Position numbers and translations under genes: made by a program. DNA of 64,000 nucleotides from Magallana gigas (taxonomy: Eukaryota). Below are positions 9,313 through 61,526 of the stretch, piece after piece. The notes beneath the pieces were generated by a model, which did no database searches, had not been told where the DNA came from, and worked only from the letters and a program-made list of their open reading frames with translations. The first letter of the stretch is position 1. Each line of letters begins with the position of its first letter. The stretch is from positions 31,434,001-31,498,000 of the forward strand of contig NC_088853.1 in assembly GCF_963853765.1 (NCBI RefSeq), given 5' to 3'.

Positions 9313-9385
9313 ATGATTGATTTGAGAATGATTGCTTTACCCTGGACTTTATTTGTTTCTTTCCACGGTTATGGATCCTGCTATG
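9313..9385 (+). CDS. Copy A exon 1, signal peptide MIDLRMIALPWTLFVSFHGYGSCY
   Basis: ATG, hydrophobic stretch, G|GTAAAG donor; paralogous to 28163-28235. Confidence 0.8.
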
Positions 9386-12300
9386 GTAAAGTGATATTTT
9401 TAATACTGTTATCATATGTTTAATAAATATTTGCTTTACTTTTGTTTTAAATGTACATTTTACTTTCCTTTGACTCAGTTTATCTAGGGTTTGTATCCTC
9501 CTGTAGACTTGTCTAGCTTTACTGTGAAAATTAGTAAGCTTTGATATTATCAAACGCTTGTTTAATTTTAGAAGAACCTTCATGTTAAGATACTATTGAA
9601 ACACGCAATTACTTATATAATGTCTATTTTTAATGATAATAGTAATATTGTCCATGGATTGTTTACATTAAAAAGTATATAATATCCTTTGTCATGCGCG
9701 GATCTAAATAGATAGCCCCCCCCCCCCCCCCTGTAAAATTAAAATTTCTTTACATTACAGAATAAAATTACCAAAGATATGCCTAGGACCCCCCCCCCCC
9801 CCCTCCCGGCAAACTCAAATAACCGACGGACCTACTTGTAAAATTTTCTGGATCCGCGCATGTTTGTACATACGTGCTAAGGATATGAACAATATATATT
9901 ATGCCAAAAAAAAAAGATTTACATTGCAATAATTTTATACCATGCCGGAAGATGGAGCTTTGATTCGGTGATTAATACGATAGCTTATTAACGATATACA
10001 ATGATTGGATTTGAATCAATGAATTTGTGCGAATTTTCTAGTTCATATAAAACTCCATAAAATTGTGATTGCATTGCGCACTGCTGAATTGAGGCTTTGG
10101 AATACTACAAAAAGAGTATTGTTGCGATGTTATTATAAGTAAATAAGTATGTTCCTGGGAAATGATAGCAATAGAAGGAGTAATAGTACATTGTTCATAA
10201 GAACTGGAAAAAAATGAATTTGAAACAATATTGTTGATATTATTATAATATTATATTGTTTGATATGATTCATATCCTACATGGTATTTTTAAACAAGAA
10301 AATCTCAGTAGAAGACCCACAACAGTACTCACCCAAAGTTCGACCTACAATGCACAGACAGCATCAATTGCTAACGATGGCGATGTTCAGACTGATGAAC
10401 TCCATTGTTCTCATACTGCGCATAATCACACAAAGGCATGGCTGCAGGTGGACTTTGGACAACCTTTTATGATAAACAATGTTATAATTCATTATAGAAG
10501 AGAAGGTACGTATAGCATGATTTTAAACATACACATTAACATTTTTAAAAAAGCACTATTGTGTTGTAATGTTGGTTTTAAAGTAGTTTTAAAACCACGT
10601 GCTTGCAGTTGTTAGTGTTTGCCTATTTAAGGATCTTATTTGTAGACAAAATGTGGGTAAGTTCAATATATGAATCTATTAGGCAAAATATAAACAGTCA
10701 CGCTACGTATACGTGTAGTTTTACATAAAAAGCTTATGAAATTAACTTATTTTACATAAGGTGTTTTCTTATTTTATTTAAAACAATTTTTTCATTTATC
10801 TATTGTCTTCATGACATATTTCACCAAAGCATATCGATTTGCCATGCTATTGAACAGTACCAAATATATCGTGAATGGGAATCAGGTTTCTTCGTATATA
10901 TAACAAAAACAAAAACATTTTACTAAACAGCTACAATGGGGGGGGGGGGTTGCCTTATTACGGCTAATAAATATATTGATTTTAGTTGTATCACTCAAGT
11001 GGTCTTCATTTCTTTTGAATAGGCGATGAATCATCGTCTTGGAAGCAGTATCGGTTCAGGCAATTCTATCTAGATGCATCAAACAAGTCAGCTATAGAGA
11101 CAACGACGTCACAAAGAACCCGTTGTTACACCGATAACACCACTGCCCCAGACTTACCCCCAAACATAATAGACATACCTTGTAAACAGACAGCTAGATA
11201 CGTCATTGTGGAGACCACGTATGACGCACCTGAAGATGATTACATTGATGAACACGGAGCAATCCTTGAAATATGTGAAATAAAAGTATACGGTAAAGTT
11301 AAAATTCAAGTCAAAATTTAAGGAACTAATAACGACCACTTGTAATATGAATGAATATATTACACTGTACCATTTTTGCTGAGTTCAAATATATAGTATC
11401 GCTGTCATTATTTTTCAATATGCTACGAAAGTCATCATGAAAATTATCAGATCAGAGTGTTATAAATAATAGTTCAAATTCAAAATGTTCATAAGTATTA
11501 AAAGGTAATAGTAATAAAAACTGTGGCCATCACATTGGGTTATTGAAGTTTAATATAATTCTATATTATATTTCACAATATTTTGATCGACTCTTGCAAA
11601 TCTGTTCGAAGTGCGTGGATATCGATCTTTCATCACTTCTCTGTTTAACGCATTTAATGTAAGATGAGGATTTATTGAATCATTTTAAATTACTTAAATT
11701 TGTATTGCTATATAAGAGCTAAAGGGAATGAACTACAGTAACATGACTGACAAAATATTTAAAAAAAAAACTGCAATTTTTACCTGAAACTTTTTTAAAA
11801 AGTTATATTCCCTTCATTTTAATTTTTATTTTGTCAAAATATCTGCAATAAATGATTAATTTTGTTTCATGTTTTAAGAAGAGGGGAAGTTTATGCATAT
11901 ATTCGTCAGGAGATTGGTATGGATTTCACTTCACAATACTTAATAGTATATGCGATGCCTATAGACTTCTAAGTGATATTCAAGGTGCAATCATTTGGAC
12001 GATAAAATAAATTTTAACGGAAGACAACTACGTTTGTTAGAAGAAAAAAAAATTGTTATTTTGATGCAGATTGCAAATGTGTTTAGTCATAAACATAATA
12101 CAACCTTATCACTTCATAATGTTTATAGCATACCATATTTTAGTGAAAATATATAGCAGCATTCTAGCTTTATTTTGTCCAAGTGAGAACTAAAAAAACC
12201 TCTTGGTTTACATTTTGATATTTCAACAATATATATTTACATAATTATCTGTACGTAATCATAAATATGCGTTTTCCTGTTTGTATATCAGTGTGTAATT

Positions 12301-60500: not shown

Positions 60501-61526
60501 TTATGCATATTCATTGGCATAATTCAAACTAAACTTGTCAGATTCGGAGTATCTCTCCGATGGTTACCTCACCCTACACATTTCGCCATGATGTTAATAA
60601 GTCAACCCGTTTCTTGGCACCCCGTTCTAAAAATGTCTTTCCATCAGCACTAAAATAGCCTTAATTGTTCCATTCAATTTATTAACTTTTTGTATTAATC
60701 AAAGTCCGATCCAAGGTATCTGCCCGCGTTGCATGATGAACTCGTCCTACATCTTTCGTTAATTAGTCAATCCGCTTTCTTGGTTACCCCGTTGTGGAAA
60801 GTTATATCCCATTCTCTCACCATAGGTCGTGATTCGCAAGTGAATGAGTATCAAAACTAAAACCATCCACTGAAGAAACGAATCGACTCATTTTATTTAT
60901 TCAATATTTGTCAAATCTTAACTTCTATGTATTTTTTTAAAATAGGCTCACAATAAATATATTCACTCTTAACGTATTTATTCAATATTGATTCATTGCA
61001 AGTATTTATTTTGATCGAGACTATCGATCCCTGACTTGGATCCGCCAAAGCGTGTCTACCACCTTACTCTCATTTTTGTTATTTCGGGCTTATTTCTCGA
61101 AAATGGAAGTAGGTTTTTAATTAATTTCACAATTATAACTTATCATTTAAAATTCAGTTATACCTTACGGACATCATCTCATGTTCACATGTGTTGAAAT
61201 ACCAAAGGTAAGCAGTTACTCTGGAGCAGGCGTTTTGTAGCTTATTTGCAAAATGCTTTAATTTATAAGTATAGATATGATTACACTATAGGCAAAACAG
61301 CCACTTACCGCCCAATTATAAAATGTAACTTTAATGTTGCAGGATTTTTAGAAACAAAGCATGCAAGAGTCAAGATGTTAATCAAGAGGAAAAGAAGGAC
61401 ACTGATTCCATTTCCACCCCTGGGATTTATGATACAGCGGAAGAAAACGCCGGATACCAAGAATTGGGTCAACTCAGCGGACCATCTCACTACGATCATC
61501 TCCAAGGGCCAGCAACTAATAAATAG
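51480..61526 (+). CDS. Receptor copy C: signal peptide + F-type-lectin-like domain + long EGF stalk + TM + ITAM tail; 7 exons, 1782 nt, 593 aa
   Basis: Exons 51480-51537, 53164-53370, 54054-54323, 57995-58384, 58643-59212, 59395-59497, 61343-61526; GT-AG, same phases as copy A, no internal stops. The N-gap at 54616-54746 lies in intron 3. Confidence 0.88.
53164..53370 (+). CDS. Copy C exon 2 (lectin-like domain N-half, ..CAHTAPNNEKAWLQVDFG..YYRRDG)
   Basis: 207 nt open, AG/GT flanked. Confidence 0.92.
54054..54323 (+). CDS. Copy C exon 3 (lectin-like domain C-half)
   Basis: 270 nt, WKQYRFRQFYLD..LEICEIEVYG; contained in ORF 54041-54337. Confidence 0.92.
54616..54746. other. Assembly gap (131 N) in intron 3 of copy C
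   Basis: Run of N. Confidence 1.
56540..57120. repeat. Degenerate ~150-180-bp tandem units (GTGACCTT..GGTCAAGGTC), satellite-like HINE cargo
   Basis: The motif recurs at ~56616, 56799, 56944, 57094. Confidence 0.5.
57995..58384 (+). CDS. Copy C exon 4, EGF repeats
   Basis: 390 nt Cys-rich open frame, TAG acceptor, GTAAG donor. Confidence 0.92.
58643..59212 (+). CDS. Copy C exon 5, EGF repeats with an internal 2 x 189-nt duplication
   Basis: 570 nt open; units at ~58771-58959 and ~58960-59148 share ..CP.GCDR..G.C.GDCP.GKFGEFCNK.C. Confidence 0.92.
59395..59497 (+). CDS. Copy C exon 6, transmembrane helix (LYAVITVFCISLLVNIFTITW)
   Basis: 103 nt, CAG acceptor, TG|GTATGT donor. Confidence 0.88.
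61343..61526 (+). CDS. Copy C exon 7, cytoplasmic tail with IYDTA and YQEL-x8-YDHL, stop TAG
   Basis: TTGCAG acceptor; the frame differs from listed ORF 61246-61545 but matches the copy A tail. Confidence 0.9.

Follow-up and report, generated by a model that had tools for sequence, protein, structure and literature searches.

A stretch of 64,000 nucleotides of the Magallana gigas genome (assembly GCF_963853765.1, contig NC_088853.1, 31,434,001 to 31,498,000, hereafter the window, with positions counted from its first letter) carries three related gene copies that we call A, B and C. Genes A and C each encode a predicted type I membrane protein with an F-type lectin head, a stalk of epidermal growth factor (EGF)-like repeats, a transmembrane segment and a tail with a tyrosine-based activation motif of the immunoreceptor type (ITAM). 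We favour, with moderate confidence, the reading that A and C are expressed members of an oyster-specific family of type I receptors, whose lectin head would bind a glycan and whose ITAM would signal through Syk. A first-pass annotation of the window had described a diversifying cluster of fucolectin-headed activating receptors and proposed a variable glycan-sensing immune system. Its observation was right, its architectural reading largely right and its functional reading plausible. Invertebrates have no antibodies, and by what means they diversify recognition is still an open question; outside vertebrates, few ITAM receptors have a ligand-binding head that is known. The family described here offers a concrete and testable set, with about 45 clustered genes, a loop-variable lectin head, a length-variable stalk, a conserved ITAM and phosphatase-coupled sisters.

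Structure and transcripts of genes A and C

Both complete genes, assembled by six-frame reading and enumeration of splice sites, lie on the plus strand and have seven exons (Table 1). Gene A extends from 9313 to 19336 and encodes an open protein of 399 aa; gene C extends from 51480 to 61526, the last base of its stop codon, and encodes an open protein of 593 aa. All exon borders of the two genes are canonical AG/GT. The exon plan that had been reported, with an exon 2 of 207 nt in A, B and C, and an exon 3 of 270 nt and a transmembrane exon of 103 nt in A and C, was reproduced in every figure. The first exon of A is homologous to that of copy B and to the N-terminus of protein P0016.

We placed the RNA contigs of four runs, taken from four studies, on positions 54040-59520. 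Three joints (54322 to 57994, 58383 to 58642 and 59212 to 59395), each of the GT..AG type, were found in all four runs, and one contig of 1527 nt spans exons 3 to 6 of gene C, with one loose end that reads the 3' end of exon 2 and another that reads the beginning of exon 7. Gene C is therefore transcribed and spliced as modelled, so that, for this gene, the spliced transcripts presupposed by the first-pass annotation do exist. The reading frame of gene C is independent of the assembly gap in its third intron, because an RNA joint crosses this gap and because the family proteins pass from head straight to stalk with nothing between; neither of the two assembly gaps of the window affects any reading frame. 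In the same intron, at 55100-57520, there are patches of high RNA-contig depth with odd joints and many loose ends, and the minus strand has an open frame of 154 aa (55874-56335); all of these have the appearance of dispersed repeats or of pieces of transposons that are transcribed elsewhere.

Gene C is already present in RefSeq, under a misleading automatic name: the M. gigas protein P0117, called 'MEGF6', equals our model from exon 2 to the stop over 574 residues, and starts with a different first exon that encodes no signal peptide. Gene C thus has two candidate first exons, the one that we modelled (51480-51537, with a signal peptide) and the one beginning at the RefSeq ATG (50859, with none). 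The RNA-type runs contain 16-20% of the sampled words from the 8.5-kb span of gene C and, subject to a possible contribution of near-identical paralogues, 10-18% of those from the 9.2-kb span of gene A; both shares are about what is expected for mature mRNAs.

The head is an F-type lectin domain

Exon 2 alone exceeds the Pfam cut-offs for F5_F8_type_C (PF00754) and F5_F8_type_C_2 (PF22633), with 30.7 bits for each in gene A, and so do the full-length relatives; Pfam returned nothing for exon 3 alone. The profile and fold tests were carried out on close database relatives of A and C, not on the spliced A and C proteins. A profile built from 27 whole heads of database relatives was searched against all PDB sequences. 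Its top matches were striped-bass FBP32 (1.3e-22) and the lectin domain of lectinolysin (2.4e-15), followed by the fucose module of S. pneumoniae (SpX, 7e-10) and eel agglutinin (AAA, 3e-9). Modules of the CBM32 family reached only about 1e-4, and CBM32 and neuropilin ranked at 1e-4 or worse. An AF2 model of a family head (P0029:71-234), with a predicted confidence (pLDDT) of 96.4, was compared with known structures using Foldseek: the best PDB entries were 3cqo, 3le0/3lek, 2j1r and 1k12 (TM-score 0.67-0.75), the best Swiss-Prot entries were eel fucolectins 1-7, and CBM32 modules came close behind the F-type lectins in the fold ranking. Judged by profile homology and predicted fold, the head is established as an F-type lectin domain, in agreement with the fucolectin-type head that had been proposed.

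The hidden Markov model alignment also bears on the sugar site. The family His (in CSHT), the first Arg (in YYRxE) and the second Arg (in YRFRQF) fall on the His/Arg/Arg residues that bind sugar in the solved lectins. The D of the DG motif and the C-E pair of the C-terminal strand do not vary across the family alignment, and these residues would correspond to calcium ligands of AAA. The head may bind fucose or another glycan, and its sugar specificity is putative.

The stalk and the tail

In A the two EGF exons add up to 354 nt (168+186) and in C to 960 nt (390+570), the very difference in stalk length that had been noted earlier. The stalk is made of regular six-cysteine units with a Cys spacing of 3-3-4-6-3-8, about three of them in A (21 Cys) and about ten in C (61 Cys). 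All extracellular exons are in phase 1-1, and exons of this class can be shuffled with the frame left intact. By eye, exon 5 of A resembles the start and the end of exon 5 of C. Repeat number therefore differs between A and C, partly within exons. The Pfam matches of the EGF exons were all weak and below threshold (EGF_STAB1-2, EGF_TEN), and a phmmer search of exon 5 of C against PDB sequences returned nothing. The repeat type named in the first-pass annotation, Laminin_EGF, was not confirmed, and we define the repeats by their Cys spacing instead; of the two domains for which a profile search had been advised, the F5_F8_type_C match on exon 2 is the one that was found. The description of a Draper/MEGF-style stalk lacking an EMI domain proved accurate, as the Cys repeats are present and Pfam found no EMI domain, either at the N-terminus of the full-length relatives or in the exons of the window.

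No charged residue was seen in the transmembrane segment. The tail that follows has about 60 residues and carries, in A as in C, a YDT(V/A) motif and then YxxL-x8-YxxL, which falls within the ITAM definition YxxL/I-x6-8-YxxL/I; the NPxY motif is absent from both tails. Of the 17 tail exons that could be read from the genome, 14 retain the spacing between the two YxxL, and so do Ostrea and Saccostrea members in which the linker residues differ. The ITAM that had been recognized earlier is thus canonical and conserved across oyster genera, and the maintenance of the x8 spacing while the linkers change argues for selection on the motif.

Selection and exchange among the heads

We then asked whether the heads deserve to be called diversifying. 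For 18 paralogues, dN/dS (the ratio of non-synonymous to synonymous substitution rates) was computed pairwise for each exon, and changes were counted by parsimony for each codon. For exon 2 the median pairwise dN/dS was 0.30 and for exon 3 it was 0.17; in no pair did the ratio exceed 1. The fast codons, with a site ratio of 1.0-1.9, are codons 17-23, 35 and 42 of exon 2, and codons 2-5, 21, 41-43 and 73-77 of exon 3, codons 2-5 forming the loop between the second and third basic residues; none was individually significant in the per-codon count. Hypervariable codons in the loops reach about 1.2-1.9; such codons flank the triad of His/Arg/Arg, and the framework hardly varies. The heads are loop-variable and we do not claim positive selection, so that the word 'diversifying', taken in that sense, is not supported.

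The divergence between A and C is uneven along the gene. Synonymous divergence (dS) rises from 0.29 in exon 2 to 0.71 in exon 3, and the transmembrane exon and exon 1 are only 56-60% identical. This mosaic is compatible with conversion or exon exchange, which it hints at and does not prove. In another M. gigas subfamily (P0007, 388 aa) the head is 24-26% identical in the alignment, and the transmembrane segment and tail are almost identical to those of C, which suggests that head or tail exons may have been exchanged between subfamilies.

A large family restricted to oysters

The genome counts were made on the 564-Mb assembly, a strong match of exon 3 being one with E < 1e-20. There are 45 such matches, 44 of them on contig C1 and 40 within 24.8-33.5 Mb of it; exon 2 gave 51 matches and the tail exon 37. 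The copies of the window are therefore a small part of a family of about 45 loci, and not a self-contained cluster. One neighbouring paralogue, L005 (C1:31427524-31430793, minus strand), lies about 4-5 kb before the start of the window; the CAIT sequence that it carries at the sugar site is also found in L007, L009 and L011. An exhaustive comparison of exon 3 with 1.84 billion representative proteins returned 75 clusters only. Twenty of these were looked up, and the 18 that had a species name all came from oysters (Magallana, Crassostrea, Saccostrea and Ostrea). These data support a head subtype found only in Ostreidae, and bear out the earlier claim of a lineage-specific family as opposed to a single-copy gene conserved across animals. 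F-type heads that are more distant also occur joined to EGF repeats, in Patella for instance.

Automatic pipelines have called the relatives draper-like, CED-1-like, MEGF6/10/11, SREC-like or receptor tyrosine phosphatase (RPTP-like). We correct these misleading names here; in transcriptome studies of oyster disease resistance they obscure the head that the genes have in common. The same names, together with an EGF-repeat stalk and an ITAM tail that fit the Draper/MEGF10 plan, and with heads under overall purifying selection, would also suit engulfment or scavenger receptors of the Draper/CED-1 kind. Such receptors would deal with self material (apoptotic cells, debris or remodelling tissue), the lectin head replacing EMI as the ligand-binding end and the ITAM driving phagocytosis as in Draper-Shark signalling. 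We consider this unlikely: some 45 copies in one lineage, with hypervariable loops beside the sugar site, are a poor fit to a single conserved self ligand, and the family has neither the EMI domain nor the NPxY motif.

Phosphatase-coupled sisters

The same head and stalk are also fused to a transmembrane segment and tyrosine-phosphatase domains. In the C. virginica protein P0040 there are two Y_phosphatase stretches, and for M. gigas, Saccostrea and Ostrea, too, there are records of this head joined to phosphatase domains (P0123, P0118, P0121 and P0124, in addition to P0040). The fusion was thus present in every oyster genus that we looked at, with heads 60-66% identical to those of the ITAM type. 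The M. gigas locus (C1:46781234-46820380) is on the same contig, outside the window. From their domain composition, the phosphatase-coupled members are a possible signal-terminating counterpart of the ITAM members. The analogy with vertebrate paired receptors that had been drawn earlier is strengthened in one unforeseen respect, the shared head and stalk on tandem tyrosine phosphatases; that the two types may oppose each other or share ligands is proposed by analogy. In its full form, the proposal is a germline-encoded paired lectin-receptor system, in which one loop-variable ectodomain is combined with an ITAM in cis in about 35 or more genes and with a tandem phosphatase in a few genes per species; we put it forward tentatively, as a rather unlikely possibility.

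The architecture and the pairing of ITAM with phosphatase appear to be undescribed. The domain combinations given in two F-type lectin reviews include transmembrane, CCP, CTLD and pentraxin modules and none that joins an EGF stalk to an ITAM, and in the literature that we searched, including CgDraper/CgMEGF and fucolectin with ITAM in C. gigas, we found no description of a lectin-EGF-ITAM architecture.

Oyster F-type lectin domains are best known from bindin, a sperm protein built of them (PMC5712786). This precedent, and the fact that fast-changing loops are also typical of reproductive proteins, could point to a non-immune role in cell recognition or adhesion, be it between gametes, in larval settlement or in tissues. 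We judge such a role improbable, since the conserved ITAM and the phosphatase-coupled sisters point to tyrosine-kinase signalling within a cell that responds rather than to plain adhesion, and transcripts occur in many unrelated RNA studies.

Proposed function

According to the reading that we favour, the stalk would hold the lectin head off the membrane, and the head would bind a glycan, probably a fucosylated one, that microbes or altered cells display. Once the receptors cluster, Src-type kinases would phosphorylate the ITAM, the tandem SH2 domains of oyster Syk would dock on the phosphorylated motif, and ERK signalling or phagocytosis could follow; the sister genes with tandem tyrosine-phosphatase domains could oppose this signal. 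The Syk of oysters, which is expressed in haemocytes, possesses tandem SH2 domains and binds CgIgR, an ITAM receptor, leading to ERK signalling and phagocytosis (PMC6994640). In C. virginica, agranular haemocytes are enriched for dozens of 'draper-like' genes and more than 40 receptor phosphatases (PMC13070813). The A and C family would thus plausibly provide good candidates for variable sugar-sensing immune receptors.

Several points weigh against this proposal. The published fucose-binding motif is HX24RXDX4(R/K) (PMC5712786). A and C do not follow it literally, reading H-x27-R-x-E/D-x10-R, with x6 in place of x10 in the short-loop members. The His is replaced in 6 of the 27 family representatives, and the neighbouring paralogue L005 lacks it (CAIT in place of CSHT). 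The family heads also lack the vicinal Cys-Cys pair, which in F-type lectins stacks on fucose, and YxxL motifs can serve as endocytic signals too. The C. virginica haemocyte result is based on automatic gene names, not on the loci of the window, and the evidence for transcripts of gene A consists of k-mer shares, which near-identical paralogues could supply. For the genes of the window, the ligand, sugar binding, haemocyte expression, phosphorylation, recruitment of Syk and signalling through it, an activating function and an immune role are inferred.

Some of these points would suit a set of endocytic receptors, in which the head has lost sugar binding and become protein-binding or structural, and the tail tyrosines act mainly as YxxPhi endocytosis signals. 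The loop from the second to the third basic residue has 6-10 residues instead of 4, there is no Cys-Cys pair, and the His is replaced in several members. We regard this as very unlikely, because the His, both Arg, the acidic partner and the DG and C-E columns are conserved in A, C and most members, and because the exact x8 spacing of the two YxxL is kept despite changes in the linker, a spacing that endocytic motifs do not need. Receptors that sense glycans and signal through an ITAM accordingly remain the reading that we prefer for A and C.

Copy B and the history of the region

Copy B retains exons 1 and 2 only, and no EGF, transmembrane or tail exons were found 3' of its breakpoint. A self-comparison of the window by BLAST showed that 8906-11022, which extends from the upstream region of A to the end of its intron 2, matches 27777-30491, and that the directly adjoining segment, 30492-31931, matches 25102-26430. 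In the parental block this last segment is found past both the C-type lectin gene and gene A in its entirety. Because the junction joins parental segments that are not adjacent, copy B must come from a duplicate of the block containing A and the C-type lectin gene, minus about 14 kb. Copy B is thus a deletion-truncated relic of the receptor family. The possibility that its missing exons are hidden in the assembly gap at 33161-33393 was rejected, given that the copy jumps from the intron 2 acceptor of A to DNA past the C-type lectin gene.

A second block about 1 Mb away (C1:32470960-32491772) contains an A-type gene, a B-type exon 2 of the same score and a protease copy 94% identical to that of the window. 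Compared with window positions 8906-43000, it has the same gene set with a different spacing. Since the truncated B-type copy is present in both blocks, the truncation is older than the later segmental duplication. Four further near-identical A-type genes, whose exon 3 is 92-97% identical, are located within 1.5 Mb. Of the modes of evolution that had been proposed for the cluster, duplication (here of whole segments), a variable repeat number and the truncation of B are thus substantiated, and conversion is only hinted at; the variation in repeat number may reflect contraction or expansion.

Genes interleaved with the receptors

The first-pass annotation had placed a secreted-type PAN-CTLD lectin (CTLD, C-type lectin-like domain) and a protease among the receptor copies. 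Both genes were found (Table 1), and the C-type lectin assignment held. The PAN part had no support from Pfam, a scan of the 24857-25186 exon giving no PAN domain, and comes as a language-model lead. An intron of this gene contains a tandem repeat (23794-24147) of units of about 70-100 nt that are 91-93% identical.

The protease gene matches Pfam Nal1_C with an E-value of 0.0027. Its frame is split in the window into two blocks 2.4 kb apart, by an intron or an insertion. The genome holds about 18 copies, most of them open frames of 320-370 aa with no interruption, and several copies are in the same chromosome region. Among language-model clusters, those nearest to the protease are hypothetical proteins of bacteria or viruses and plant NAL1.

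Table 1. Coordinates of the receptor exons, neighbouring genes and assembly gaps in the window.
Feature	Position	Strand	Description
Gene A exon 1	9313..9385	+	ATG at 9313, hydrophobic signal peptide, GTAAAG donor, ends in phase 1
Gene A exon 2 (207 nt)	10299..10505	+	N-terminal half of F-type lectin domain; CSHT His, YRRE Arg
Gene A exon 3 (270 nt)	11023..11292	+	C-terminal half of F-type lectin domain; variable loop, third basic residue, ICEIKVYG end
Gene A exon 4 (168 nt)	16505..16672	+	EGF-like stalk, phase 1-1; DNA 74% identical to 3' part of C exon 4
Gene A exon 5 (186 nt)	17682..17867	+	EGF-like stalk, phase 1-1
Gene A exon 6 (103 nt)	18433..18535	+	Transmembrane segment
Gene A exon 7	19144..19336	+	Cytoplasmic tail: YDTV, then ITAM YEDL-x8-YDQL, then stop
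PAN-like + C-type lectin gene	23141..25186	-	Lectin_C E 1.9e-11
PAN-like exon of C-type lectin gene	~25186-24857	-	PAN_1 feature lead from language model, score 0.92
Other exon blocks of C-type lectin gene	24759-24619, 24219-24115, 23383-23141	-	Last block is the CTLD, with EPS motif
Copy B exon 1	28163..28235	+	Open; 85% identical to A exon 1
Copy B exon 2 (207 nt)	29820..30026	+	Open; 95.7% identical to A
Copy B breakpoint	30491..30492		Copy of A intron 2 ends at AG acceptor of exon 3, joined to copy of 25102-26430; ~14 kb lost
Assembly gap	33161..33393		Between B remnant and protease gene; no family exons on either side
NAL1-like trypsin-fold serine protease gene	39584..42856	-	Two open blocks: 42856-42413 (TAAHV), 39985-39584 (GDSGS)
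Gene C exon 1 (modelled)	51480..51537	+	Signal peptide; homologous to first exons of A, B and other family members
Gene C exon 2 (207 nt)	53164..53370	+	First half of F-type lectin domain; Pfam PF22633 36.9 bits
Gene C exon 3 (270 nt)	54054..54323	+	Second half of F-type lectin domain
Assembly gap (N)	54616..54746		Inside gene C intron 3; skipped by spliced RNA
Gene C exon 4 (390 nt)	57995..58384	+	EGF-like stalk
Gene C exon 5 (570 nt)	58643..59212	+	EGF-like stalk
Gene C exon 6 (103 nt)	59395..59497	+	Transmembrane segment
Gene C exon 7	61343..61526	+	Tail: YDTA, then ITAM YQEL-x8-YDHL, then stop; identical to P0117 tail

Comparison with known systems

The closest relatives of the head are the F-type lectins, such as eel agglutinin AAA, striped bass FBP32, oyster bindin and Drosophila furrowed, which have the same fold and clear profile homology to it. 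Their His/Arg/Arg triad and their D-G and C-E columns align with the oyster head, and in eel fucolectins and bindin the variation is concentrated in the loops around the site, as it is in the oyster receptors. However, the oyster receptors have just one such domain, set on a membrane protein that also bears an EGF stalk and an ITAM; its binding loops are longer and it lacks the vicinal disulfide.

Draper, CED-1, MEGF10, Jedi-1 and SREC are likewise type I proteins with many atypical EGF-like repeats and a short tail with tyrosine motifs, and the ITAM of Draper recruits a Syk-family kinase. In contrast to them, the oyster receptors have a lectin domain in place of EMI and no NPxY, and the family comprises about 45 lineage-specific copies, whereas the Draper group is represented by one to few conserved orthologues. 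In the same species, CgIgR offers the nearest signalling parallel: this haemocyte receptor has a cis tail ITAM that recruits CgSyk and it promotes phagocytosis (PMC6994640). CgIgR also differs in having an Ig-domain ectodomain and in being a single gene and not a large cluster.

Finally, the vertebrate Ly49, NKG2, Dectin/DCIR and Siglec receptors are also encoded by clustered, duplicating genes, and they also carry similar lectin ectodomains on opposing signalling modules. Their lectin fold differs from that of the oyster head. Moreover, the activating motif of the oyster receptors is in cis, with no DAP12/FcRgamma adaptor, and the presumed opposing partner is a receptor tyrosine phosphatase instead of a tail with an immunoreceptor tyrosine-based inhibitory motif (ITIM). 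If the paired system tentatively proposed above were true, it would form a tunable, diversified repertoire for glycan recognition by haemocytes, one that arose independently of the vertebrate paired receptors.

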